Source: Amoeboaphelidium protococcarum X5 (lineage: Eukaryota; Fungi; Aphelidiomycota). Taken from it: DNA of 64,000 bases. The stretch is from NCBI GenBank assembly GCA_023515725.1, contig JALDTO010000266.1, positions 1,445,607 through 1,509,606 of the forward strand, given 5' to 3'. Positions 1 through 22,169 of this stretch are shown here, piece by piece. The notes beneath the pieces were generated by a model. The model did not search any database and was not told the origin of the DNA. It saw only the letters and a list, made by a program, of their open reading frames with translations. The position numbers and the translations under genes are program-made. Numbering within the stretch: position 1 is the first letter of the stretch; each line of letters begins with the position of its first letter.

Positions 1-3000
1 TAAAATCACTCAATTGCCCAGTATGAGGGACAAGGCTCCCTATTCTCAAAGCATAGAAGGGACAAGTTCAAGAGTGCCTCTATTGCTATCACTTATGGAG
101 TCGATGATTTTTAATTACTGAAATCCTTGATAAAGTCTGTGGATGTGTATGTCCATCCAAGTAGTCATAGCAGTTGTACTGGGAGAATTGTCAAGTTGGT
201 GGCGCTGTTATGTGAGACTCTCCATTCTCGTGTGCGTATGGAGAAATATGGTTAGACTAGATATGAAGAGAATGCGTTTATCTCGTATGAAGATCTATCT
301 CATCGAGTCAGATTATTCTATTCTTTATTAGAGGTGTCTGTGTTTGGAAAGGATTAGAAGAGTGTTAGCGAATCTTTGGCTGGTATTAGACACTTGGTAT
401 GGTTGGCGCCAGAGATTATCAATGATGCCGTTGTGAAAGTTCTCCCTAGTCTTGAAGGAGTTGATATGGCGCACAGAACTTCTAGTAGTTTATAAATGTT
501 GTCTTATATGAGCATTCCTATGATTCATAGATTCCATAATCCATCTGGTGCAGAGTAGATGAATATGCTTCTGCGTCTGTCTCTACCTGGCATTGATATG
601 AATGATCCCAACAAGACTTTTAATACTCTGTTAATGTACTGCAAATTGTTTGTGTTTATACCATTGCATTAAACTGCTACTGTTGGTGTAAAGTGTGAAC
701 TTCCATCTGATCTTGCAGGATACAGAGGTCCAGTCAATGGTTAGTAGACTCATGGCGATGCTCAAGATTTAGAAGCATATATAGAAAGTACCGCTATCCT
801 CACGTAGTATTTGCCAGAGTTTTTGTTCGAGTTACTGAACAAAATTGAAGTCTTGATTGAGAACTTGCCTAGATTGTCTGAGACTAATGCCACAATTGAA
901 GGCAATCTGATGCATGTCGTTGTGTTTCTGTGTGATATTCTGTTCCGCTAATGCAGTGTAAGTAATCTTGACATTGTAGAGACCTGGCTTATCAAGATTG
1001 TAAATATGGCGGCCATCCCTGCTAGTAAATTCATCTCGCAGATAATATCCATCTACCTGATTGCGCGTCCAATTGCCCTTAAAAAGATTGCTGATTACAT
1101 CCAAGTATCGATTGAGCGTGAGATTGAGTACGGCTCCGGTCGTAAGGCTTCAATTATCAAGCATTCTCACGAGTCTCAACAGGAGCTGGTTGGTGATTAT
1201 ATGTTGTGGTATTACCTTATTCTGTATCGTGGCTGTGCCATGTCTGTCGGTCATGCATTTGGTGCGAATATTTCAAATTCTGTCTCTGTTTGTCAGTAGA
1301 TGGTTGAAAATGCATCGCGCTGGCTCTTACAAGTGGCATCAAGGACGTGTTATTCTGTTATCACCCGTATTTTGCGTTGTGTGTTGAGCAGTGTGAGTTC
1401 TATATTTGTACTTGAACGCGGTGCTATCTCTAATGATTGCACACCTGATGCTGCTACTCAATACTCTTTTCTCTGGGGACTCAGCCCTTATGAACGAGTG
1501 TGCTAGAAGCTTGGATAACCGCTAGGATCTTTTATTTTGGATGAGAGACGCCACAAGAGCAATGTTGGTGAATCATTGTAAAAGGCTTTGCCTTAAGAGT
1601 AGTTTTGGAATGAAATTAAGTTGGAACTTAATGTTCAATGGCATATTCCTAGAGATCAAGAGAAGAAGTTGGCCTTGAGCATTGTTAAGACTACAGTTGA
1701 GCCTCTGATTGCTTAACTTAGCGGTTTCAGTGCTCTCGCTGGGCGATAATCGGCGACTTCTGAGTAGAATACCGCCCAGAATCTATGCAAATGTCTTACC
1801 CAGATATATCATGCAATCCAAGGAATGGCTACCCTTTTGGACGTGGATCACGCGAATGTGAACAAGGATGATTCTGCTCGTGCTCGCTTCTCCTCAGTGT
1901 CCAGTGTTGATGAAGACTTTTCATTGCCTGAACAGTAGGATATGGCCATGTAAGAGTCTCTGGAAGACTTGGTTGGCGGATAGGGAGGAGATTTTATGGA
2001 TCATGGCATTGAAGAGGGGCATTATCTAAAGAAACCTCTGCCTGCTGGATATGTTTTCACGGATCCCAACTCTGATGAGTACAGGTACGTACTGTCGGTG
2101 AGACATAAGATTGGTTAGTCGTTGCTGTAAGTTTGTCAATTCATGAAAGATAATCTTAGCGATAATATTGAGTGTCAGATCATGCTTGTGAAGTCCATTC
2201 GCGCGTATTTGGTTGATCGCGGTCTGGAGAAGGATCGATATGATGATTACAGTAGAGCCTACTTGTTTATGAAGAGTGTTCTGCGCATTGGTTCTCGCAG
2301 AGAGTATAAGATGTATTCACATTATTTGTGGCTAAAGAGACTGCAACTGGCTCATCATGCTAGATTGAAGCATAACAGTTTGAGCGAGAAAGGGAATCTG
2401 GTTGATATCTAACTTTGCCGTCAGTTACTTGGTCATTTGGTAGAGCTTGCAACTGGGAATTACACGGACGTTCGTATAGAATCTTAGCATGTACTGTTGA
2501 AATTGCTTAGCTCTTTTGCCAAATTGAAATATCATATTCTAGATCAGACTTTTGAGCTTATCAGAGAAACTTTGAAGCTCTTGGCCAAGTCTCCTAAAGA
2601 TTCTTTGTTGTTGAATAGACTCAAAGGCGCACTGAATATTCTGTCGTTGAAGCCGTTCAGCAATGTTTATCGTCGGCGATGGAAGTACATATCCAAGTTC
2701 TTGGTGTCAGTGGTCAAATGTTTAGCCGTAGATAATGCCCACGTTCAGGATTTGGTGCACAATGTCTTTCTAGATTTCATCAATAAGTTTCAGAGTCCCC
2801 CTTTGTCCGTCAACAGACTGGAGTTTGTAAAAGCTTCTGATGCGAATTTTACTCAAGTGCAGAGTAAGCGCTTTAGCGAGCACCTCTAGATCTATAATGA
2901 TTTGATTGTCTCGCTATTGCACTTGGAGTAGGTGGCCAGTCATTGGAAGAGTAGTGCTTTCATCTTGAATATGGTGGATATGTTGTTGAGACCCGATGTT

Positions 3001-5160
3001 CCGTTGAGGTCAGATGTTGTGACTTCTATTGTATCTAATGTTAATAACGAGTCTCTAGCTGTAAGAAAAGTTGCATAGGCAGCTTTTGTTGGCCTGGTGA
3101 AGAAGATCAAGGTGCGCAGCTAGTTATTGGATCCGAAGATGCCTTAAAAGTATAAGCTGATTGCTTCATAATCGCAGTATGTTGGCTCAGGGGCTGCAGA
3201 GTAGACGGAACTGTTTATTGATGATCAATCTCTTGGCTGGCTGTTCAGTCCTTCTAGTTTCAAGGCTTATTTGAAGAATACTGATGATGCAAATTTGCTT
3301 TTGTATAAGTTGAAATCTACCGCTGAATTGCCTGTGTATTAGAGTCTGATTAATTTGGTGTCTAGCTCTGAGTTTTGGTAGTCCTTACTGAAGTTCAATG
3401 CTTTAGAGTCGACCAAGTTTAATTCTAAACGCGCCGCATAGCCTGGAGAAGAGCACTTTTCAACTTTGAACGTAAACGTTTATAAGCAGATATTCAGAGT
3501 AATTGAGGATCAGGTTCTGTATAAAGTTATTAGTCCCATGGTAGAGCCGTGGTTCAACAAGTTGGATGATAAAGCCTTGAGTAGGGCGGCCTCTGAGTTT
3601 TCTACTGGTCTGGTGCTTGGCAGTAAGTTGTGGTCGCAGTAGAAGAAGGATAAATTGTGGAGTTGGTTAACTCCGCTGTTGAGAAAAGCTTTGCTGGGAT
3701 GTACTTAAGAGAATCTGTAGTTCTGGCATTACTTTATACGTTTATCCTGCTCTCATCACGACTTGCACAGAAGAGTTTAATTGCAATAGCTTCTTCTCGA
3801 TGATCCTCTACTTGCCATTAACATTGACGCGTAGACGTCGTCATTCGCCGAGTTGAAGAAGTTGAAGTTTAAATTCTATTTTATGGCTGCTTATTAGTTC
3901 AAATTAAAGCCACAAGCTTAGAAAATGGCTCTGGAGTATGCTCAACTTATCACATGTCCATCCAAGTAGGTTCGTGAAATGCTTGCTCTAAACATAAGTC
4001 AATGTCTTCTTGCATCTTATCAACCTAATGAGCTGGTAGATTAATTGCAGATGCCAAAGCTTGAAGGATGGAGAAAGTTACTCGCCGTAGATCAGAATAG
4101 CTTGCAACTGTTTGAGTCTCTATCATCAATCGACAGGTAGAACGGAGACTTGGTGGTAGGAAAAGTTTACGGATCAGAATTTGGATAATCTGCGAAATCT
4201 ATGTTGTAATTTATTGTGGAGCCAATATCTGCGGGGTAAGGTCACCGTATTTTGCCTCTTTTGCTACAAGGTAATAGTCCCTATATTCAAGATTTACTGC
4301 GGCTGTAGTCAGTGGACGATTTGGAACTTGCCAATGCGGCAGTAAATGTTCTGTCTATCGTTCCAGACATGAGTATTCCGCCTTATGAACGCATAAGCTT
4401 CACCAAGACTCTTCTCGATGCATTCCGCACAGGTTTAGTAGAATGCGCAGCCAAAGATGAAGAGTCCAAAAGAAAGATCAAGCTTCGTATTCTCGCAATG
4501 TTGCAAGTTGTCACCGTGAGAAATATTTTGTTCATTCTGAAGGAGTAGGAAATTGTCGATGTTGTTGTGTCGCTATGTCTTGAATTGTTGGTGGATTAAA
4601 GTGTAGAGGTGAGAATATTGGCTGGTATAACTATTGGTGGTCTTGTGAGATTATTCAATAGTCAATCACTGATTGATGTCTTGCGTAAGAAATTTGTATC
4701 TTTTATTGCCGCCGCTGGAAAAGAATCTACTAGTGGAGGAGGTACTATGTCTATTGCCAAGAAACACGGTGGAATTCTGGGATTATGTGCATTGATCCAG
4801 GCATATCCTCATGATATTAAGTCTTTTACTGCAGAAATTCTGGTTCAGTTATCAAGACATTTAAAAGAGCAGTCGCCAATTGACCGCTCTGTGAAATTGC
4901 TTTTCGCTAGTTTCCGCAAGTCTCATCAGGATACCTGGCATCAAGATGTTCTAAACGGAGAATAGGAAGATTACTATGACATTTATGGTTACAGTAGAAG
5001 TAAGAATAGGAGTGGCGGAACGCGTGATAAAGCAGCCAATCAGCAGAGTGCTGTCGTTCCTTCTGGTAGTGATGATGATGTTCGTAATGGAAAGTTTACG
5101 TAGGCGCAATTAGACAAGCTGGAAGGATTACTTACTAGTGCATCAACTTACTATGCATGA
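1..5160 (+). CDS. BLM10: Proteasome activator PA200/Blm10 (5'-partial)
   Basis: The frame-1 ORF fragments join into one reading when TAA/TAG=Gln. Recognisable segments include LPGIDMNDPNKT and HGGILGLCALIQAYP...FRKSHQDTW. It ends in the diagnostic C-terminal YYA (HbYX motif) followed by TGA at 5158-5160. Confidence 0.93.
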
Positions 5161-8940: not shown

Positions 8941-11890
8941 ATGGCCAGCAAGCAGATTGTGAATAAAGCTCCGTAAGAAGCCGGATTGTATCTGGTTCCC
9001 CTGGTTTACACTGGACAAGGAGACGTTCTAGTTCCCACACATCAAGTATCTTGCCAAGCTAACGGTATGTATCATATTTTTTCATGTTTTCTATATCATA
9101 TCTTCTATTGCTGTTTATGCCTCTTTCGTTTATGAATGTGTAGTAATTAATCTCCTCTGCCATAATCAAGTAACGTAAACTTTCAAGGTGAGTGCGATTT
9201 AGAATGCAGCAGACATTGTTGGGGATGTTGAAGCCATCTATCGTTTGCCACTTGTCGATAGAGCTCTCATTAACGGGCTGGAAATTAACATTGATGGAAG
9301 GAATATCACAACTTCCATCTCTGATACTGACACCGGTAACAATCAAGAGGATATGATTGCCTAGATGGACAAGCCCAAGCGTGAATTGTTGCAGATCAAT
9401 ATGGGTCAACTGAAGTCCAACTCTATCGTTACCGTATCTATCTCTATGCTATATGAGCTAAAGAATTATAACCAGCAATGTGTCAATTACGTTATACCTA
9501 CCCATTTGATTGGAAAGGACTGGAAGGAGGACCATAAGGTTTCTTTCAAGGCCAGTATTCATTTCTAGATGCTGTCTCAGATTAAGAATATTGTTTCATC
9601 CGTACCAGATGCGTAAATTGAACTGAATTGTGCCAGAGATGCTAATAAGCGCGTAGTAAAGGAGGAAGATAAGGCTAGACATGCACAAGTGAACGTCGAT
9701 TTGAAGTTGTCTAAGGAAGACTTGTCATCTGAGCACACTCTGTCCATCTTTACTGCAAAGTGGGGCTAGTCTATGGCTATTACTGAATTCAATCCCAAGA
9801 CTAAAACTTACTGCACCATGTTGGATTTGTGCCCATAATTCAAACAGGGAGAAGGTGAGATGAAGTGTGACTTCGTAATTTGTTTTGATATGACTTCCCA
9901 GATGGTTGGTGGCAAGGCATATAGAATGAAATAAGCAATTCAGGTGTTGTTGAAGTCGCTACCTGAAGACTGTTTCTTCAACCTAATTGGCTTCGGTGCT
10001 GGCTGTGCTGCCATGTAGCCGTATAAGAGCTTAATCAATGGCCCTGATGCTCAGGAAATGGCCACTGCTTTCTTGGATGGAATACAGCCAGACATGGGTG
10101 CTAAACGTGATTTAGAAGTGTTTAAGAATGCTTTTACTGAAATCAAATTATAGCCTAATTATCGCCGCCAAATTTTTGTGATTACTGGTGGAGAATTTGA
10201 GAAGGCTGATGAAGTGCTCAAGTATGTTCGTAGCTAGTCTAATGGTGGTAGAGGAAGATTGTTTTGTGTTGGCATTGGTAAAGCGTCAAATCCGGCGTTC
10301 TTGGAGAAGTTGGGCTCTTATGGAAGTGGCGAAGCATACTTTGTCAATTCTCAGGATAGGTTGGAGCTGAAGATGTTGGCCATGTTGAAGAAGGCTATGC
10401 AACACGGCGCACGTAATTTCAGAGTACGCTGGGTTGACAACAAGGTGTTTTAGTCTGCCGCGCCATCCACTCCCGAGAGTGCCAGTACGAAGAGTAAAGA
10501 TGGATCTACGAAGACTTTCGGTATGAAGGACTTGTTTACTGTGGATGAAGCTGATGTGGCCAAATAAGAGTCTTTCAAATTTGACGAACACGTTCTATGT
10601 CAGACCCCAGCTGATATTCATTCTCTGTACGTTGGTAAGAGAACTTCGGTGTTTGCGTTCACCAAGTTACCTGCTCAGCTACTGAAGGAACTATTTCTGT
10701 CTGCTGCCTCCACGGAAGGCCCATAAGACTTTACGGCTGAGGTTGTGAGCTCCGTCATGATTGTCGGTGAGAATGATGTGCCAATCATTCATACTATGGC
10801 TGCAAAGCGCTTGATCAATGATTTGGAAGACAATCGCTCCTACTTTCATATTGGTCTTCCTTTCCATCCGACGCTGGAGGCTAAGAAGAGATCTCCATCT
10901 CAAGTTGATGCGAAAGACATCTCTGCAACTATTGTCAAGCTAGGCAAGGAGTACAGTTTAATGACATCAAAGACTTCGCTGATTGCCACGAATGAGTTTG
11001 GAGAGTAGTTGAAGAAGACAGATCTGAGCATTAATTGGATCATTCCAAGTCATCGCGCGGCTAATGCTAAGGCTTTAAGTCCACGTGGTCAGACTCCGAG
11101 TCCGTCACCAACGAAGTCTTCACTGAGCGACAAAAAGGATTCAAGTTCCGGTGATGTTAAAGGATTAGGATCTCGCAGCAGTCGCACCAGTTTATTCTCG
11201 TTTAAGCGCAAAGATTTGGGCAAGACTCCAGCCAATGCTCCTGCACCTAGTGCTGACTCTGGTAAAGGATCTTCATTAGCTCCGGGAAGCAATCAGTCGT
11301 TTGTAGAGTCTCACATTTCCTAGGGATCAGATGGTGGAGCAAAGATGTCCTAACTCTCTAGTGATCATTACGGCAATACCTCCGCCTCCATGTCCAGAAT
11401 CTCAGCTGATGGAGAAGGAACAGCTACGGAGGCTTCCAATTTTCAGGAACCGCCAGCGAATGACAAGTATTCAATTATAGTGTCTCTGCTGCGTTTCCAA
11501 CAGGCTGATGGCTCTTTTGTGTGGAAGAATGAACTGGTTGATCAATTGTCTTTACTGCCTCAAGCAGTCGGCCAACAACAATAGTTGGACTAAATTTAAG
11601 CCTCTCTAGCTGAGGATGATAAGAGTACAATATATCGCAACGATATTTCAGGAAAGGTGAATAGCGGTAAGTCTCAGGTAATTCTGGATCCTAATGCTGA
11701 AGAATAGCAAGCAGTGTGGGCCACGCTTCTGGTGCTGGCTTATTTTGAAATTCATCTGCCAAGTGAACGTGACATTATTGCATAGAGTGAAAAGAAGGCC
11801 AACAAGTGGTTGGACTAGCCTCAGTAACTTGGCTATTTGAGCGTTTCTAAAGATCAGGCTGTCGATGCTGCAAGATCCGTCTATGCGTGA
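8941..11890 (+). CDS. VIT + von Willebrand A domain protein (VWA5A-like); intron 9065-9143
   Basis: VIT-like N-terminus (VEAIYRLPL...INGLEINIDGR) and vWA domain (LLKSLPEDCFFNLIGFG, IFVITGG, FCVGIG). The family C-terminal motifs LGKEYSLMTSKTSLIA and QQADGSF are present. Single frame after the intron to TGA at 11888. Confidence 0.85.
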
Positions 11891-12353
11891 AGTTTGCATG
11901 GTAGTGAGTGCGTCGATTACGATTTGGTATTTATGATGAGGTGAATAAATGTTGAGAATAAATTAGGTCGTGTACGTTGATTTATTTACGATAGTATCTA
12001 ATTGTTTGTCGTCTATAACTCAAAATCGTCTACCGATGTTGTACAACTACTGTACATCACCGGATCTGTACTTGATTCTCAGAAATTATAGCCAGCGTAA
12101 TGTTTGTATCGTTGATGTTTTCATCATGGCCAGGCTCGACTTTTTAACATTCCCACAGCTTTGTTTGATTTCCTGAAAGATGCCTTGGCAACGGATCAGG
12201 CTCGATCAGTTCAGCTTTGAGACTCAATTCAATTCAATGGTATTGGTAATGTTTGTTTTGGCCTGTGCTTGCTTGCCCACGCTGTTGTGTACTCTTTTTC
12301 CCATCCGACTCTGCACATTAAGACTTTTACTATAATTGCATTTTTGACTTATA

Positions 12354-14906
12354 ATGACAGTGTTTAATAAGGCTTTAACCTGTGCATGGCTGTTAACCGT
12401 TTCCTAGTTTACTCGTGCTGCTGTGCCTGTCATTGGTGGCGGGTCAACATTTCAGACTGATATTCAGATCATCTTTAATGATTATTATGCTTTCTCTTTG
12501 AATTCCACGGGTGTGGTGAGTTACAATTCTACTGGAAGTTCAGCGGGACTTAGTTAGACTATTGCTGGACTGTACATGTTTGGTGGTTCTGATTTCCGTC
12601 CTCCCGTTGGTTCAACTGTGCAGGCTATCCCTATCTACGCTGGTGGTGTGTCTGTGGTTTACAACGTCCCTGAGTTGTAATCTGCAAATATAAACTTGAG
12701 GCTATCTCGCAGTGCTCTGGTTGGTATTTTTAGTGGTCAGGTCAAAAAATGGAATGATCCTTTGATTGTGGCTGCTAATCCTTTGGCGACCTCTATACTG
12801 CCTAATTAGAACATCACAATCGTTCGTCGTTCTGATGGTAGTGGTACGACTTTTGCCTTCACATCAGGTCTATCATCAGTCGATAGTACAACATGGGTAT
12901 ATGGTGGAAACACAGTGTTCAACTGGACTTGGGCATAGAATATTGCCGCTGCTGGTAGTTCTGGTGTGGCTAAGAATGTTCTCGGATTGAGGTACAGTAT
13001 TGGATATGTCGATTCTTACATTGCCACTGATTATCAGATCTAGTCGGCCTCCATATAGAACAAGAAGCTGGAATACATTGAGCCGTCCTCTCAGTCCATT
13101 AATGCTGGCTTTCAGCGTATCTAAGGCGCCAATTTCGATATCCAAGACTTTATTGATGTGGATGAGACTGGTGCGTACCCGTTTGTTGTGTTTACGTACA
13201 ATCTTTTGAATGATAATATGAAGCAATTCTTCTCTATCACTCAGGTGCGTGAGACGTTGAAGTATCTGTATTGGTGTTTGACTGATAACTTTGCCACCAA
13301 CTCTCTGCTTGCCAATACTCTGATTCCTGTCCAATAGAATATTAGAGATGTTAATTTGAATTTGCTCAAGACGTACAAGTATGGTGATGTTTAAGTCTTT
13401 GGTTAATCTCCGTGTGACGCTCCCAACTAGTGCAAGAATGGTGGTTAGTGCAGTGTTATCTACCCGTTCACTGATCCTGTGGTGAAGTGCAAGTGTAATG
13501 CTTTGTTCACCAATGTCATTAATAGCGATTGTTCAGAGCTCTCTCCAGGAGAATTTGTCGATCTTCCTTAATTACCTGCAGTCTTGATGACCATATTCGC
13601 TCTGGCTGGCATTTTGTACACCATAGTCATGGGTCTCATGCTGGTCACCAGAGCTGATCATCCTGTGGTGAAAGCCATGAGCCCATTCTTTTGCTTCTGG
13701 ATTCTCGCTGGCTGTATTTTGAGTTATGTCTCTGTGTTCCTGTTCATCGGAGAGCCTAACAATTTTACTTGTGGTGCACGTCCTTGGTTCCTCTCGACTG
13801 CATTTGGTGCCGTGTTTGGTATGCTTGCTGCAAAGACGTGGCGTATTTACTCCATTTTTGGTAATGTTAAGCGTATGGAGGAGAGTCTTACCAACTTGAA
13901 TCTGTTCATTCGCTTCGGAGGTGTCGTGCTGAGCAGTGAATGGCTATTGGCGATCATCTGGTCCGGTGCGGGTATCTTGTAGCCTTACAACACATTCGCT
14001 GAGAACGGACTTAGCGTGGCTAGAACTTGTGCGTCTCTGAATGGAGATTTGTAGACGGCCATGTCTGTCTTATTTTATCTCTCTAATGCAGCCTTGTTGG
14101 CGTTCTGCATTTATCTTGCTTACAAGACGCGTAGTTATCAGTATCAGTACAATGAGAATCGTGAAATATCTCTAACATTGTCCTTGATCACGTTCCAACT
14201 GGTGATTGGTATCCCTTTGACGTATGTTGTCGCTTTGGATCATGAAGCTGTTTTTGTCATTACAGCTGTGACTCTCACCCTGGTGCCGTTCACTGTGACT
14301 ACAGTCATGTTTGGACCAAAGTTTTACAGCCTTTACTTGGCCAAGTTCTTCAAGAAGGAGGGCGCTTATGATATTGGAAAGTCTACGTTTGGTGCTAGTG
14401 CTACAAATGCCTCCACTGCAACTGGAGGTGCAGCAGTGAGAAAGAGTACCGAAATTCTGCCATCTGGACTGTCTTTCTGGCATTGCAGTCTGAAGCGTAA
14501 TCGTATCGGTTCTCCGTGGTTTATGTGCACCATTGCCATTGTACCGGAGATTAATTGGATTGCGTTTGTCGACGATTGGGCCAATTCCTCCCCAAAAGTG
14601 TACGAAGTCTTCAAGTTTACCGATGTGAGTTTCTCTGATCAAGTGCCGAAAGGTCAGGACCCTGAGACAAGTACACTGCTGAAAGTGGGCGCTGTTGAAT
14701 ACATCATGGAAGTGAAGACTAAAGAGTACATGGCAAAGTTCAATAAAGTCTTATCTAAAGTTTAGCACGGCGCTGAAGCCAATGTCAAGATTAAGAATAC
14801 TGCCACTGGTGAGAGTGTCAAGCAGCCAGCAACTATTGATCGATCGGCCAAGATTGATAGAACTGCAACTGAGAAAAAGATGATTATTGAGTAGGATAAA
14901 CTATGA
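12354..14906 (+). CDS. Class C (7tm_3) GPCR with signal peptide, PstS-type phosphate-binding ectodomain, EGF-like module and cytoplasmic PH-like tail (copy 1, ~850 aa)
   Basis: Single frame. PstS motifs GGGSTF, STGSSAG, FGGSD, YNVP...IFSGQVKKWNDPLI..ANP, RSDGSGTT and IGYV. EGF CKNGGQC...CKC. Class C TM signature HPVVKAMSPFF...CGARPWFLSTAFGAVFGMLAAKTWRIYSIF and YKTR...YNENREI. Confidence 0.92.
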
Positions 14907-15162
14907 TGATGTATTAGGTCGCACTATGATACATAAAGGATGATAATAATTGATTACAGGTTTATAATAAAGTTTAAAGTTGATGATGATATCTGTCTCT
15001 TTTAATGTACTGTATGAACAAAAATGAAACTTCAACACATGGAAATCCTATTGCATCAAAATCTAAACTTTATCAACCTTTATTACCAATTTCATCAAGT
15101 AAACCAAATTCTTTCACCTCAGTCATTATTAATTTCATAGCGGGTTGATACATTCATGTTGT

Positions 15163-16845
15163 TCAATCAGCCAAAATAGACTTTATCTCGGCAGACTGCA
15201 TGAATCTGGGGTAACTAGCCTTTTGCATCAGCTGGAAAATGTGGTCATACGCATCACGCAGAACATTAATGTCAAGAGATGTTGGATTGGCCTCTGCGGT
15301 CTTAATGTCAGCCAGGATTGTATCACGCGTACCTGCTAGCAAATTCAACTCATTAGGACTTCCAATGGCGACAAAGTTGTAACAAATCTCTTTACACTTT
15401 ATGAAATACTCCGTGCGGTCCATAATAGACTCCAGCTCTTGACAAGCTAAGTAGAACTTCAAGTTCTCAGTTGAGTAATCCTTCTCCAAGAAGGTCATGA
15501 ACCACTTCAATCCAAGAGGATCCTGTAGAACATCACGCAACCCCAAATTCCACATACGCGCATGACTGAAAGAAGGAGTATCTGGCACAGGTACCTCGAC
15601 ATACTTCTCCGTCTCAGACTTATCCCATGGGTTGTTCTTGTGCAAGTCAGAGCGAACCAGCGGATCAAATCTAGAGTACATGTCAATACGCGTAATAAGA
15701 TTCTTGACCGCCGTGGAGGTTGGCAGACGATAGATGTTCAGACAGGCAGTAAGATTCTCCACCTACTTCTTAAGATAAGCCTCCACTTTGGCTTCATCTT
15801 TCAACTTCTTCTCATACTTCTCCGGGCTATAGCGGTGCTTCTTGATCTTGGTGATTGGCGTCTCCTCAATGTAAAGGCGACTGGCTTTCAGCGGTCTCTG
15901 CACCTTCCAGAAGGCAGCTTCACGCAATTCAAATAGCTTCTTCTCACCACGATCCAGCCTGCTAAAGTGAGCCTTCTGCTTGTCCTTCATCTCTCTGATG
16001 AGATCTTATTTGAACTCAACAGCCTGTCCCAGGGTGGCAAGGCGCTCCTTCTCCTCCGAGTTCAAGTTGGATTTACGCTTCAAGTACAGGTAGTAATCCA
16101 GATCAGAAGTGTCCCAGAAACGACTAGGATAAAAGAAGTCAGCCTGGTACGTGTACAAGGAGTCATCTTCACGATACACCTGCTGACTATCATCGACCGG
16201 GATGATGTAGCCGTTGTCAGTCATGTTTTAGATGATCAACTTGGCATCAGCCGGGTTCAGAGCATTCAGCTCCTTCAAGAACCACACGGCAATATCATAA
16301 CCAGTAGCGCACAGTGGCTGAACATTAAGCAGTCCTTTGATGTCCTTAAAGTGGACACCATCCACGGGATCGCGCAACTTACGCAGCAACTTTTCGTAAC
16401 GCTCAAAGCGGGCCTTGACAGCGAAAGATTACCAGCGAGGCGCCACAGACAGCAGCTTTGATTAAAGCAATGCCAGCTTGTAGTCCTTCTCCTCAACATA
16501 AATCTCCTTCTTACCCGAGACTGTAGTGTTGATAGATGTACCCGCATTTTTGCTATTCAACGACTCACTCGATATGCTGATCCTACTGCCTTTGGTACCA
16601 GAGAAAGCCTTACTGATGATGGAGGTCTGCCTGTTATTCTTGGATACGATGGACATGTTGTCATCAACGATGGTACTATCTCTTGTGGTTGATGTAATGA
16701 TATCTCCACCAAGAGATGGTTATGGCGATATACCAGAGCTGGCAGCAGATGCAGTCTTCTTGCGATAGTAAGATTGCTCCTATTGTTTCATAGCCAGCTT
16801 CTTCAGTGCAGCCTTAGTCTCTTACAAATCTTCGGTATCACTCAT
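15163..16845 (-). CDS. R7-family regulator of G-protein signalling (DEP-DHEX-GGL-RGS; RGS6/7/9/11-like)
   Basis: Continuous frame with TAR=Gln. DEP (LRDPVDGV...TGYDIAVWF...NGYIIP), DHEX (FFYPSRFW...DYYLYL...EAAFWKVQRP), GGL-like (RLPTSTAVKNL...FDPL...NPW) and RGS box (LQDPLGLKWFMTFLEKDYSTENLKFY...LMQKASYPRF). Confidence 0.9.
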
Positions 16846-17370
16846 TTTAGTATTGATTGTATTGCTAGTGGGTTTTAAAAACAATAAATTTAAATTTGGT
16901 CAGTATAAATAATTAACAGATTATACACCAACTTTAAATGAGAGGAAGGCTGTATAAGCGTTGCCTAGTTCAGTCAGTGGCGAGTAAAAGTTTCATGATG
17001 AAGCCATAAACAATAGCCAGTAAATGGTTTGGTATAAAAATAAACTCTGATGGAAACCTCACCAAGTTCCCACAGTTTATGCCGGTAACTATGTAGGATA
17101 AACTCGGTTCTTAGATGCAATACTATATGTATTATTATCTGGGGGCCACTAATGCGTGCGTACATTAAAATCCATACAGTGTGTTACATGTGTTACCATA
17201 TAACACGATTCCGTACTATACTATTTAGTCTCGGTATATTTTGGCAGAGGGGGCAACTGATTACGCAAAAGTCAGCTGTCAACAGGCCAACCTGAAACGA
17301 ATCTAAACTATGACGTATCTATCATTTTTAAAGCACCAAGATACCGTTTACAAGATGGAAATATGCATAA

Positions 17371-18592
17371 TAGTCCGTTTGAACAACATGTCAAAACCTC
17401 AAAAAGTATTATTAACCAAAGCTTATTAACGTTCAAAGAAAATGACTCCCGGTGAAATCGAGGTCATAGAACGTCTTAAAGCTAAGGATTATGGCTATAC
17501 AGTTATGGCCGACGCTGTAGGCCGGTCTGAAGCCTCTATCCGTTATTGCTTTAGCCGCAAAGCAGCATCTTAGCGACTTCCCCCCCCCCCAAAGAAACGA
17601 TTAGAAATCCGAATAGAGGACGTCGAATTAGTACTATTTCGAAGTTGGCTGCAGCCAGAAGTCCGCGTTCTTCAGTTAGATCGTTGAGAGGAAAGCTTGC
17701 GTAGGAAGTCGGTACTGATTAGCCTCTGCCGAGCACAACAAGCATATATAGGCGCCTCAAATCATCTGGGATAGCAAAAAGAGTCTGTCCGAAGAAACCT
17801 GCAATAGCTTTGGTGAATTAAAGTCGTCGAGTTGCGTGGTGTAAGCTAATGAAAGAGGCGCTTCGGAAGGACCCAAATTTGATCAAACGTTTGATCATAT
17901 CTGACGAGTCCACCGAACGTCAATTTCCAGTGCGAGGCAAAGTTATGGCTTGGGCACTCTCTAAACTTGCTAGAAAGAAGCTTCCCATAAATCCCCAACG
18001 TCAGTAGGGTGGTATATCAGTGATGTTCTTCGGCTCCATGAGTTGGCATGGATTTGGACCCTTGATTCCTCTGGAGGGCAACCAAAATGGATAATCCTAT
18101 ATAAAAACTATTGATAATGCGGTAATTCCCTATATTAAAAAGTTGAGAAAAGATCATGGTGTAAGACCAGTTTTTCAGCAAGATAATGCACGCTGTCATA
18201 CCGCGAAAATTGTGTAAGAGCACTTCAAAACGCAGCGCGTGACGCTTCTCTAGGATGAGCTCGGACCTGACGGAAAATGGCCTGCATCTAGTCCTGGCCT
18301 GTCCCCGATTGAAAATGCATGGGCTCATGTGAAGAGATTGCGTCGTGAGAGGTATCCTACGCCAAAAACCAGAGAAGAGCTCATAAATCAGTTCACCGCT
18401 GTATGGGAAGGTTTGACGGTATAATACGCTCGTAAGCTCATGGAATCACTTCCAAATCGTATAGAAGAGCGTATTAAAGCTAAAGGACAGACGATTGATT
18501 ATTGATATCTTATTTTTTGACGAAATTGTGACTATAATATTGATTGATTTGATCGCTCGCTTTCGTTTGTGACAAAAAAGTGAAACGGACTG
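17371..18592 (+). mobile_element. Tc1/IS630-superfamily DNA transposon
   Basis: Contains a transposase. Imperfect terminal inverted repeats: left tAGTCCGTTT..TGTCA at 17371; right TGACA..AAACGGACTG ending at 18592 and followed by TA. The left boundary is less certain. Confidence 0.7.
17442..18505 (+). pseudogene. Tc1-like transposase (DD42E), frameshifted at a poly-C run (~17580-17590)
   Basis: HTH-like N-terminus, then KKP...N...RVAWC, SDES, VFQQDNARCH and WPASSPGLSPIENAW. The C-terminus is MESLPNRIEERIKAKGQTIDY-TGA. Confidence 0.85.
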
Positions 18593-18674
18593 TATCATCA
18601 TAATTTATAACCACTTTATATCATCTTTTATTTAAATCTTCCACACCATCTTAATTAATGTAACCCTTAAAAAA

Positions 18675-21218
18675 TCAATTGTCGTCCACAACGCTGGAAC
18701 TGATGGATGACGATGCCTTGGTAGCAACGGCCTTGTTCAACTCCAAAGCAGTCTGCTGAATACGCGGGAAAAACTTTTTGAATCTAGCCATCATATCCTT
18801 GTTCTTACTCTCCAGTGAATACTCACCGGTTGGGTGCTTGATTACACAACTCTCAGGCGTGTCACCATCAGCCAACTAACACTCGGTCAATTTCAAAGAC
18901 TCGTACACTTTCAACTGGGAGCTGGTCATATCTTCAACGGCGGCGAACCAGTTCAACTCTGGAATCACAAAAATCACAGCTTACAACCATGCAGCACCTA
19001 AACGCTTCTTACGGATGGAAAACTGCCAGAAACTCAAACCAGACTGACTGACATCACCAAAATTCTTATTACCTGAATTCTCAGCCGTGGCTGTACGAGC
19101 AAAAATGGAGTTGGACATATCATAGGCCAAACTCTTTCTGAAGAAGCGGGCAAAATACAACTCATAAACCTTGGAGCCAAACATGATCGACGTGATGAAG
19201 AGTGGGCACAAGATAAGCAGCAAGCACGTAAGAATATTAATGGAGTTGTAATCCAGCGATGGCAAGTACACTAGCGGCAGACCTACAAGCAGTGGCAGAA
19301 TGGTGGTATAGATGGCGAAGGAGATCGACTTGGACTCATTAAACTTTTCACCAGCATATCTAGTCTGAAATGCGACATAAATACATGCACAAAGCAAGAT
19401 TGCGTTAAATACGTACAACAAAGCACTCATAGTGGACGCGACGGTAGCATTGCCAGAGACACAAGTCTTCACGACAAAATTGGACGCATTCAGCACCACG
19501 GTTGGCTTCAAAGGTGATGCGGCCACCCAGATGATGCTCAACAACAACTCGAGACCACAAATGACTGATCCGAAACGCAGCAATAGACTTGCATCAGATA
19601 ATGATTAATTCACACGACGCAGATTACCAAAAATAGTGTACACACGATAATTCTTCGCAGTCATCATACCAAACACCAAGCCAAATGCAATGGACAACCA
19701 AAATGGACGCGCATTACACATAAAATCGTTTGGCTCACCCAAGAATAAGAAAACTCCTGTATAACTAATGGTACAACCACCCAGAATCAGTAAACTAAAG
19801 GTTGGTGAAATGGCCTTGATCAATGGGTGATTTCTACGGAACACCAACATCATAGCAACCACACCATTATATATAATTCCGGATATGGCAAGAAACAGTA
19901 GGAAACCATTAATCGGCTCCTGGTAAGTAATAAACAGGGACGGCGTTAATTCGCTACAATCATTATTAAGATTATTGGTGTACAACTTTGGACAGCTACA
20001 TCTTATAGTAGCCGGAATGAATGGACTCGTCTTTACGGGACACACACCACCATTCTGGCACAGGCCATCAAAATCACAGACAGAGGTGCCATACAATGGT
20101 TTGGAATCACTGTACACAAACTACTGTAGTGTTGAGATAGCATTCTGCAAGTTGGCACTATCCAGCTGCACGTAAGAGAATCTAGAGATAACACGCTAAG
20201 CATACGTATCAGTGTAGGTCCAGTAAATGTAACGCATAACAGATCTAAACTGATCAACGTTATAGTATCTAGAGACATTCTTATTCAGAGCATAGAACGT
20301 GAACGTGGTGATAGGATACGAGCCACTGGCAGTAGAATCAACATTACCGAGCGTCTCATAGTTACCCTGAGCAGCGGCCAGAGCAATCTGAGCAGAAGTC
20401 TAGTTGGCCACAGTAAGCTCATTCTGTCTGTTATAAAGACGAGCGTAATCAATCTACTTTGTCGCAGCATCAGCCAAATCAAGATATCCAACAGAGTAAG
20501 CATTACCAATGATGTTCTAAACCACACCGATGGAACCAGCACCACGAGCAAAAGGTGTCAAACCAGCATTGCCCCAATTAGGAAGACCATTCACACCAAC
20601 TTTACTGCTCCACTCCGGAGACACCTTGGTCAGAAACTGAGTGAAAGCCGTTGTAGTTCCAGAACTATCATTACGCACAATGACTTTGATATCCTGATTG
20701 ACACTAGAAAGACTAGGATTGTTTGCCACTAAAGCAGGATCATTCCATCTAATTATTGTGCCATTAAATATCTTCACAACAGTCATGCGGTCCATGATGA
20801 GGGAACAACTCTGAGAGGAACATCCAATATCAGGCACATTATAAGTAATGACGATTGCAGAACCAAAGGTGGGTAGAGTGACAAAAGAGTTGGCAAACTC
20901 AGGTGCAATAACAGATGGCAGAGCATCAGTACTACCCCAAGCAGCACCACCATTCGCAGCTGTTCTCACACCAGATCCGGAACCAACTGCAGAATACTGA
21001 ATAGAAGTGTTGGCATAACTAAAAGGTAAACTGTTATATGACAGAGCCCAATCAAACTAAACTTGAGCCTGCAGCGTAGATCCAGCGCCTTAAAGACCTA
21101 CACAATACTCATTTAAAGGTTATTCGAAACAGCTATCTTATAAAATGTTCTATCAAAACTTACTTGCTTATATAAGAGTTGCATACAATGCGGCAAAAGC
21201 AAAGTTTGTTAGTATCAT
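18675..21218 (-). CDS. Class C GPCR with PstS-type ectodomain, EGF-like module and PH-like tail (copy 2, ~825 aa); intron 21098-21163
   Basis: Signal-peptide exon 21164-21218, then a GTAAGT...TAG intron. PstS motifs GAGSTL, VGSGSG, WGSTD, WNDPALVANNP and RNDSSGTT. EGF CQNGGVC...CSC. 7TM signature HPLIKAISP...CNARPFWLSIAFGLVFGMMTAKNYRVYTIF and FQTR...FNESKSI. Confidence 0.92.
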
Positions 21219-22169
21219 CTTTCAAACAATGTACTGAATGATCCAACAGGTAATAATTAATGATGATGACGATGATGATGATATATGTTTCAGCAGAGTC
21301 TAGTGATGGATGATAAGTGATAGACAATACGCTGATAAATCAAGCCTATATCAGAAATATAATATCAGAATACTCGCCAAGCAGCACTATTGGACAAGGT
21401 GATAGTTGTATATCTAATAAATGAGAAGGATGGGAAAGCCCATAAATCGATTGTTTGTTGTAGTTTGCCGTTCTCTCATGAGTTCTTACAATAATACGCA
21501 TAAGCTTTCTGCATAGCAACGGCGTAATCAGTTGTAAGAATGGTCTGGCAAGATGAAATTGGGGAGATTAGTTCTTACATCGTCGATACATTAATTGTCT
21601 CGCTTTTGCAGAAAAGACACTTTACAAATAATGTGACAAAGCAGGTGGAAAATGAACCAGCATTGTATGAAAAAAGATTGATCAAAATGAATATTAGCTC
21701 GATACGCAGTTGTAATGCAAGTCAGCAATGAATCACGCGTTCCTCAAAAGAGTTGAGCAGATAAAAAATCTGGATATAGTATTGAAAAAACACAGGCTAG
21801 TAAAGTACGAATACCATTCCGTGCCGGATAATGTTATATGAAGAAAGCGAACAGTGTCAATGAAACCTCGACGCAGTACCCGAACTATTTCTTCTGTGCT
21901 TGACTGCGACTTGTGAACCCATCTATCTCCTCTGTGTATGTTCATCGTAAACGCGCACAATCACTCTCTCGAACAAGCTGACGATTTCTCTCATCTCCGT
22001 CCGACCGTTCGTTCAGTCCGTTCGTTCGCCGATTTCTCTCTCCCTTTTTCTCGCCTTTGAAAAGGACGATATCTCTTTTTCTTACACTGTTCCGTCAGCC
22101 GATTTTTGTTAAATCTATACAAAAGATTGATACTCGGTGGCTAACACACACACTCTCTCTCTCTATAGA

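Follow-up and report, generated by a model that had tools for sequence, protein, structure and literature searches.

Paired class C receptor genes with PstS-type ectodomains in Amoeboaphelidium protococcarum: candidate phosphate-gated GPCRs

The joining of a PstS domain to a class C G-protein-coupled receptor (GPCR) is an architecture already known from chytrids, mucoromycotes and Plasmodiophora, through the literature of 2012 and 2016 and through the public databases. In Spizellomyces punctatus, SPPG_06488 places PBP_like_2 on a Glutamate-family GPCR, and receptors of Allomyces carry other type II periplasmic-binding-protein (PBP) domains (Krishnan et al. 2012, PMC3251606). Plasmodiophora brassicae has PBP_like_2 or SBP_bac_1 fused to 7tm3, four of these proteins being predicted for phosphate; the fusions were shown to be single transcripts, horizontal gene transfer was suggested, and the proteins were interpreted as transporters (Rolfe et al. 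2016, PMC4815078). Class C GPCRs with type II solute-binding-protein (SBP) domains are also described from gut fungi (Seppala et al., PMC5168858), and a 2025 survey counted 918 Glutamate-class GPCRs in fungi, mainly in the early-diverging lineages (PMC12842992). Here we describe two genes of this kind, copy 1 and copy 2, from the aphelid Amoeboaphelidium protococcarum X5. They lie in a 64,000-nucleotide stretch of contig JALDTO010000266.1 (hereafter the window, from whose first letter all coordinates are counted), and their sequences indicate that the encoded receptors probably sense phosphate.

Like the fusions of Spizellomyces, Plasmodiophora and the gut fungi, both genes have a type II domain in place of the ANF/Venus flytrap on 7tm_3, and in two of those cases the domain is likewise PBP_like_2. 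Unlike them, however, the gut-fungal SBPs are sugar-type, and the Plasmodiophora type (P0012) has two PstS-like domains, of which the second is degenerate, and belongs to a different PstS subclade. The phosphate-site residues were not examined in the Spizellomyces, Plasmodiophora or gut-fungal papers. Receptors of Mucoromycota (P0132, P0151–P0154, P0030 and P0015) share the four-part design of PstS, EGF, 7tm_3 and tail, match at full length with E values of 1e-100 to 1e-110 and keep the ligand residues, although they are only about 35–40% identical, have Ser at the position of T10 (E. coli PstS numbering) and, in the Calcarisporiella proteins, Glu at that of D56. Paraphysoderma P0041 shares the PstS domain, the EGF linker and 7tm_3; the tail was not detected in it. 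These mucoromycote and Paraphysoderma proteins are unannotated, standing in the databases as 'hypothetical' or 'GPCR family 3 profile' entries.

Domain architecture and phosphate site of the two paralogs

The G+C content of the window is 40–46%. Throughout, long reading frames are interrupted by TAA or TAG and never by TGA (for example, 1–5160 contains 56 TAA/TAG codons), which justifies the use of translation table 6, where both codons are read as Gln. Such a code has been reported for A. protococcarum (PMC5304391). The code had also raised the thought of a ciliate, which was dropped in view of the GTAAGT-type introns and the fungal nearest homologues; these, like the code, suit an aphelid. 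When TAA and TAG are read as Gln, copy 1 and copy 2 are two full-length paralogs that are collinear over 797 residues with 37% identity. Both have the same order of parts: the signal peptide comes first, then the PstS domain, an EGF-like linker with six Cys, the class C seven-transmembrane (7TM) domain and, last, a PH-like tail. Database searches were carried out with stop-free pieces (for copy 2, pieces of exon 2), and the TAA/TAG read-through translations were analysed by local scripts. The features of the two genes are as follows.

12354–14906, plus strand: copy 1 gene, one open reading frame (ORF) from the ATG at 12354 to the TGA at 14906, with 18 in-frame TAA/TAG codons read as Gln, about 850 residues
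12354–12419, plus strand: copy 1 predicted signal peptide, a hydrophobic N-terminus before PstS, read by eye from the sequence
12423–13340, plus strand: copy 1 PstS domain (TIGR00975)
13368–13571, plus strand: copy 1 EGF-like six-Cys linker (C356, C362, C368, C381, C383 and C395)
13578–14321, plus strand: copy 1 class C 7TM domain (7tm_3; PF00003)
14433–14765, plus strand: copy 1 conserved cytoplasmic tail domain, PH-like, kept in copy 2 and in the Mucoromycota receptors
21164–21218, minus strand: copy 2 exon 1, with the ATG at 21218, an 18-residue hydrophobic signal peptide and a GTAAGT donor that begins at 21163
21098–21163, minus strand: copy 2 predicted intron, 66 nucleotides, GTAAGT...TAG, deduced from the sequence
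18675–21097, minus strand: copy 2 exon 2, ending with the TGA stop at 18675–18677
20163–21095, minus strand: copy 2 PstS domain (TIGR00975; PDB alignment to 2Z22)
19923–20120, minus strand: copy 2 EGF-like six-Cys linker, from the cysteine pattern and iterated search
19170–19928, minus strand: copy 2 class C 7TM domain (7tm_3; PF00003)
18756–19064, minus strand: copy 2 conserved PH-like tail domain, from iterated search

Removal of the predicted intron would bring copy 2 back into frame, giving ...Q-A / S-L-Q-G-A-G-S-T-L.

Both ectodomains match the PstS family model TIGR00975 far beyond chance. In the read-through translations, copy 1 is matched at 12435–13340 with an E value of 9.9e-50 (172.2 bits; model positions 3–302 of 315) and copy 2 at 20163–21095 with 3.0e-45 (157.5 bits; positions 1–299). 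Even alone, the 179-residue stop-free piece of copy 2 reached 4.4e-32 with TIGR00975 and 5e-15 with PF12849 (56.4 bits against a cut-off of 27), and among crystal structures it found Yersinia PstS (3.5e-22) and E. coli PstS (2e-18). Pfam matches of the 40–70-residue stop-free pieces of copy 1 stayed below threshold. Designed beta-propellers were the sole PDB matches of its 49-residue N-terminal piece and were rejected as spurious.

An earlier note on this DNA, made from the letters alone, had read the phosphate-contacting segments of PstS in both copies. This reading is borne out: GGGSTF, GSS, FGGSD and RSDGSGTT are present in copy 1 (plus strand, frame starting at 12348) and GAGSTL, GSG, WGSTD and RNDSSGTT in copy 2 (minus strand, from 21097 downwards), and they align with the corresponding E. 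coli positions. The phosphate site of E. coli PstS comprises T10, F11 (backbone), S38, D56, R135, D137, S139, G140 and T141, and this numbering was carried over through HMMER alignments, from the copy 2 piece to 2Z22, from P0030 to 1IXH, and then through an alignment of 177 domains. Copy 1 has T34, F35, S64, D82, R161, D163, S165, G166 and T167 at these positions (TFSDRDSGT), identical at nine of nine. Copy 2 has T26, L27, S58, D76, R160, D162, S164, G165 and T166 (TLSDRDSGT), identical at eight of nine, the one change being at the backbone-only contact. In E. coli PstS, position 11 takes part only through its backbone NH. The codons are located as follows.

Plus strand, copy 1 site: T34 at 12447–12449, F35 at 12450–12452, S64 at 12537–12539, D82 at 12591–12593
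Plus strand, copy 1 site: R161 at 12828–12830, D163 at 12834–12836, S165-G166-T167 at 12840–12848
Minus strand, copy 2 site: T26 at 21075–21077, L27 at 21072–21074, S58 at 20979–20981, D76 at 20925–20927
Minus strand, copy 2 site: R160 at 20673–20675, D162 at 20667–20669, S164-G165-T166 at 20655–20663

TFSDRDSGT is also the most frequent pattern in bacteria (75 of the 177 domains). The site has thus been retained in both paralogs, as the earlier note held, despite an identity of 34% between their PstS domains; mean identity to single-domain PstS is 32.5% for copy 1 and 29.2% for copy 2. Two-domain relatives provide a comparison within one polypeptide. Their first PstS domain almost always keeps the site residues, and the membrane-proximal PstS-like domain is without most of them (for example, Q---RDCEE, --SDENSEA and KVNNRDCSE). 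Since these degenerate second domains keep the fold and lose the residues, the site appears to be kept because selection acts on ligand binding, and not because the fold requires it. The site-less membrane-proximal domains suggest a spacer or regulatory role in those relatives, many of which have two to four PstS-like domains in tandem (P0014, P0040, P0105, P0086, P0029, P0010 and P0001).

With bacterial PstS (TIGR00975, PF12849; 1IXH, 2Z22), then, the ectodomains share homology over the whole domain and identical or equivalent residues at all nine site positions. In contrast to the free periplasmic protein, they belong to a eukaryotic subclade and are tethered to a 7TM receptor by the EGF-like linker. 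For a structural view, residues 40–445 of the closest full-length homologue, Calcarisporiella P0030, were folded as a proxy with a 32-row alignment. The ectodomain model has a predicted local distance difference test score (pLDDT) of 89.1 and a predicted template-modelling score (pTM) of 0.84, with low confidence in the EGF-like region. In Foldseek it superposes on phosphate-bound PstS (2Z22, 1QUK) with a target-normalised TM score of 0.92 and an rmsd of 2.1 Å, and its first 49 PDB matches are all phosphate-binding proteins. The DING proteins and human phosphate-binding protein (HPBP), which are also eukaryote-associated phosphate binders of the PstS fold, are soluble and untethered, and structurally far more distant: they rank 21st or lower, with TM scores of 0.63–0.68 against 0.92 for the E. 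coli type.

In frame after PstS, both copies show 7tm_3 (PF00003) at 141.5 bits (copy 1) and 150.7 bits (copy 2) against a cut-off of 33.5, covering model positions 8–251 and 2–251 of 251. A profile search of the table-6 translation, as the earlier note had proposed, therefore finds the PstS and 7TM families in each copy. Hydropathy peaks mark transmembrane helices (TM) 1, 2, 4, 5, 6 and 7, TM3 being less hydrophobic. The nearest solved relatives of the 7TM domain are GABA-B2 (1e-12) and mGluR4 (2e-11), followed by mGluR2 and GABA-B1; AKTWR in TM3 aligns with GABA-B2 and FGPK in TM7, with its PK motif, aligns with GABA-B1. Both copies also keep one Cys just before TM3 and another in the second extracellular loop.

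The two receptors thus resemble canonical class C GPCRs (GABA-B, mGluR, CaSR) in their homologous 7TM domain, their TM3 and TM7 motifs and the logic of a clamshell placed before the 7TM bundle. Canonical members have a type I flytrap (ANF_receptor/Peripla_BP_6) and, for the most part, a nine-Cys NCD3G linker, whereas here one finds PstS, a six-Cys EGF-like linker and a PH-like domain after TM7. That PstS replaces the type I Venus flytrap, a further claim of the earlier note, is supported by the presence of the PstS ectodomain and 7tm_3 in one frame and by a genome without ANF_receptor. The linker has the pattern C-x5-C-x5-C-x12/13-C-x-C-x11-C in both copies, and Pfam EGF/EGF_2 matches it below threshold (E 0.5–0.9). 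The tail domain, of about 110 residues, follows TM7 and has no Pfam match; it was modelled with a pLDDT of 80, and in structure comparison each of its top matches is a PH domain (one is that of GRK2, which binds G-beta-gamma), though these matches are weak (E of at least 0.015, TM scores of 0.5–0.6). The density of N-glycosylation sequons did not distinguish ectodomain from tail.

Homeologous contig, transcript and signalling partners

The arrangement of receptor, regulator of G-protein signalling (RGS) gene and receptor is repeated on a second contig (C316, locus L001 1–9201), which matches window positions 12054–21401 with 93–94% DNA identity. The encoded receptors are 97.8% (copy 1) and 98.4% (copy 2) identical to their homeologs. 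With a synonymous divergence (dS) of about 0.22, the ratio of non-synonymous to synonymous change (dN/dS; Nei–Gojobori method, table-6 code) is 0.044 for copy 1 and 0.022 for copy 2, and it lies between 0.02 and 0.06 when PstS, EGF and 7TM of both copies and the tail of copy 1 are taken separately. In the tail of copy 2, no non-synonymous change was seen relative to the C316 homeolog. Since purifying selection acts in every domain, the stretch from PstS to tail behaves as one coding unit.

RNA evidence for copy 1 comes from one run, a 2024 freshwater metatranscriptome (X1), which contains seven short contigs of it within 12330–14581. Some of these lie in the PstS half and others in the 7TM/tail half, and one spans 12330–12546 unspliced. 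They match the C316 haplotype at 37 of the 40 listed differences, and by this match the organism, or one of its parental genomes, occurs in that freshwater sample. A single transcript carrying both PstS and 7TM is strongly implied by the ORF and by the selection on it.

The 23.6-Mb assembly contains only four TIGR00975 matches and only four 7tm_3 matches, namely the two genes and their two homeologs, and no ANF_receptor domain was found anywhere in it. It follows that the two copies and their homeologs make up the entire class C repertoire of the organism. The assembly also contains about five G-alpha genes, all of them duplicated. These, too, form near-identical pairs on different contigs, and the assembly looks, from its sequence, like a diverged diploid, hybrid or duplicated genome.

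Between the two receptors lies one further signalling gene.

15163–16899, minus strand: RGS gene with DHEX-like, GGL and RGS domains

Pfam RGS matches it at 4.8e-22, GGL at 5.6e-06 (26.7 bits, just below the cut-off of 27.1) and DHEX weakly. Its layout is that of an R7-type RGS protein, in a non-animal genome. Between this gene and copy 2, about 1.23 kb (17366–18593) is without counterpart in the otherwise collinear C316 (L001 5728–5734), and on this alignment is an insertion that one homeologous copy has and the other lacks. Immediately upstream of copy 1, at 8963–11890 on the plus strand, there is a TGA-free ORF of 975 codons.

Proposed mechanism and competing readings

We consider it reasonably likely, from the sequences, that both genes encode cell-surface, phosphate-gated class C GPCRs with a PstS-type orthophosphate-binding ectodomain. 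In such a receptor, extracellular orthophosphate would be clasped between the two PstS lobes by the bacterial-type hydrogen-bond set of Thr, Ser, Asp, Arg and Ser-Gly-Thr. By way of the EGF-like linker with its many disulfides, closure of the hinge would then reach the 7TM bundle, which resembles that of GABA-B and mGluR and would in turn activate one of the heterotrimeric G proteins of the organism. The RGS protein encoded between the receptor genes would be a plausible terminator of the signal. We infer all four elements, that is, phosphate as ligand, coupling of closure to the 7TM bundle, G-protein signalling and the role of RGS. Orthophosphate is the most economical ligand, because the complete set of phosphate ligands is kept in both paralogs.

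Several points weigh against this assignment. First, both TIGR00975 scores are below the NCBIfam equivalog cut-off of 205 bits, above which the same function as transporter PstS is assigned; by this measure the two domains are homologous to, yet not equivalogs of, the ABC-transporter component. Second, the structural support rests on a model of a homologue with 35–40% identity, and not on the window's own ectodomains. Third, class C receptors signal as dimers and bacterial PstS is monomeric, so that a receptor class that signals through dimers here carries a normally monomeric type II domain. A homodimer prediction for the P0030 ectodomain scored 0.00, which is evidence neither for nor against a dimer. 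In GABA-B, the ligand is bound by one subunit only; since both paralogs here keep the site, unlike GABA-B, a heterodimer of the two is conceivable, although nothing in the data points to it. Fourth, the RNA contigs leave 13466–14002 unbridged, and carry-over of DNA in that library is possible. Finally, a full-text search of the literature, with PstS/PBP_like_2 and GPCR terms, returned no binding or signalling study of any family member, and no paper that looks at the phosphate-site residues.

The alternative that survives best keeps the receptor and changes the ligand, which would be another oxyanion (arsenate, vanadate, phosphite or sulfate) or a phosphate-bearing molecule of the algal host or of the environment, such as the end of a polyphosphate. 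The low identity to bacterial PstS, about 30%, and the scores below the equivalog cut-off leave room for such a change, and GrlD, a class C GPCR of Dictyostelium, is reported, in a work cited in PMC10445921, to mediate polyphosphate sensing. Nevertheless, every hydrogen-bonding residue is kept, including the equivalent of Asp56, and the fully enclosed pocket of PstS counts against esters or polymers. In E. coli PstS, according to the structures 1IXH and 1IXI of the Quiocho laboratory, Asp56 reportedly takes a proton from phosphate and hence discriminates against sulfate; both structures are among the PDB matches of the copy 2 piece or the P0030 model. We therefore regard a different ligand as unlikely.

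More doubtful still is the idea that PstS serves here as an ectodomain for structure or adhesion, independent of any ligand, or that the receptor is constitutively active, with the site as a relic. The persistence of second PstS-like domains in related receptors after loss of their site shows how such a domain might be kept. In copy 1 and copy 2, however, the site is intact across the 34% identity that separates them; related receptors, with few exceptions, keep it in their first PstS domain too, and the PstS domain of copy 1 and copy 2 evolves with a dN/dS of 0.03–0.06.

Could the two proteins be solute transporters or transceptors, in which the binding domain hands phosphate over to a seven-helix permease? 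The PBP_like_2 and 7tm3 proteins of Plasmodiophora have been annotated as phosphate transporters (Rolfe et al. 2016, PMC4815078). In the present case, the 7TM part is a bona fide 7tm_3 of 141–151 bits that is closest to GABA-B and mGlu and has the signalling motifs of TM3 and TM7, G-alpha and RGS genes are at hand, and the PH-like tail is of a signalling type. We know of no class C 7TM domain that transports solutes. No BPD_transp_1 permease (PstC/PstA-type) was found in the 23.6-Mb assembly, although the control search matched 14 of 14 prokaryotes; thus, the PstS domains cannot serve an ABC importer. We hold the transporter reading to be highly improbable.

Relatives, origin and meaning of the sensor head

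Phosphate-gated receptors of this design would be part of a wider set of proteins. An exhaustive HMMER search that used the copy 2 piece as query yielded 4,917 proteins with E values of up to 1e-3; many of the best 150 have several domains, and architectures were read from Pfam scans and source names. A further protein search, narrowed by a word pre-filter because words of PstS are so common, gave 14, 9 and 3 matches, and the taxonomic distribution is for this reason a lower bound. Among these proteins, PstS is joined to 7tm_3 in Endogone, Jimgerdemannia and Calcarisporiella (Mucoromycota), Paraphysoderma (Blastocladiomycota) and Plasmodiophora (Rhizaria), as well as in one MMETSP protist and several metagenomic sequences. 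The same head is also found on other outputs. Receptor guanylate cyclases of Haliotis (P0155), Littorina (P0165), Owenia (P0159) and Fabomonas (P0011) have a domain of the same PstS subfamily in place of ANF_receptor, with the site intact as SFSDRDSGT; in contrast to the window's receptors, their output is a single-pass kinase-homology and guanylate cyclase module, and NCBI names them 'atrial natriuretic peptide receptor-like'. Further PstS heads sit on a phosphodiesterase (Tetraselmis), a PARP protein, a SulP transporter and proteins of Andalucia and Willaertia. Chromosphaera has a protein with four PstS domains and a TRP-channel match below threshold, and Rigifila a PstS-PstS-ANF protein.

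Two trees were calculated, with FastTree for 143 domains and with IQ-TREE (LG+C20 PMSF) for 54 domains. In both, the receptor-tethered eukaryotic PstS domains are separated, with a branch support of 99 (Shimodaira–Hasegawa-like approximate likelihood-ratio test, SH-aLRT), from the single-domain sequences (88 of them), which are best matches to copy 2 only, mostly without taxon label and presumably bacterial. The receptor-tethered clade includes fungi, Ichthyosporea, molluscs, annelids, CRuMs, ancyromonads, Rhizaria, Discoba and green algae. Within it, copy 1 and copy 2 pair with each other (support 95 and 93), so that their duplication took place in this lineage. They lie on the same side of a branch as the mucoromycote receptors, with a support of 91 in FastTree (SH-like) and of 56 in IQ-TREE (SH-aLRT). 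In addition, an iterated search from copy 1 detected the EGF linker and the tail in P0030, P0132 and P0151–P0154; among relatives, the two occur together only in mucoromycote receptors. On this evidence the receptors belong to an old family of the fungal lineage that is shared with Mucoromycota and nested in a pan-eukaryotic set of receptor-tethered PstS domains.

The approximately unbiased (AU) test rejected monophyly of the GPCR-linked PstS domains taken together (p 0.008), for a group that had been picked after the first tree was seen. The rejection suggests that the sensor head has recombined with output modules more than once.

The earlier note had proposed that a PstS domain was acquired horizontally and fused to a GPCR in this genome, and had suggested a phylogeny of the domain. 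The trees do split a eukaryotic receptor-tethered clade from single-domain PstS, but they place the domain inside that clade and give no support to a recent transfer from bacteria. Since the domain lies inside the pan-eukaryotic clade, with mucoromycote receptors as neighbours, any acquisition from bacteria would be ancient and not lineage-specific. That this lineage recently took up a bacterial pstS gene and joined it to a GPCR of its own is accordingly the least credible of the readings: PstS is overwhelmingly bacterial, and the sequence falls with the E. coli type and not with DING, but the domain groups with the receptor-tethered PstS of many eukaryotic supergroups, its nearest relatives have the same linker and tail, TAA/TAG codons occur in frame throughout, copy 2 has a predicted spliceosomal intron, and the PstS domains of the two paralogs are already far diverged.

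Extracellular phosphate sensing in eukaryotes is poorly defined, the known routes being transporters that act as transceptors or side effects on other receptors. If the present assignment is true, a fully conserved PstS pocket of high specificity that is coupled to a GPCR would be a dedicated and directly testable phosphate sensor. The architecture is not new in kind. The locus is, however, a clean and compact example of it, with two diverged paralogs, homeologs under strong purifying selection and an adjacent RGS gene. Comparison with its relatives shows that eukaryotes of many supergroups have this sensor head on other outputs as well, guanylate cyclases and phosphodiesterases among them. 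It is tempting, though tentative, to see in these proteins a conserved eukaryotic class of 'metabotropic phosphate receptors', in which an intact PstS domain would report orthophosphate to G proteins or, in the sister architectures, to guanylate cyclase (including that of molluscs and annelids), phosphodiesterase and others. In A. protococcarum, the two RGS-flanking paralogs might then form a GABA-B-like heterodimer that guides the nutrient or host sensing of the parasite.

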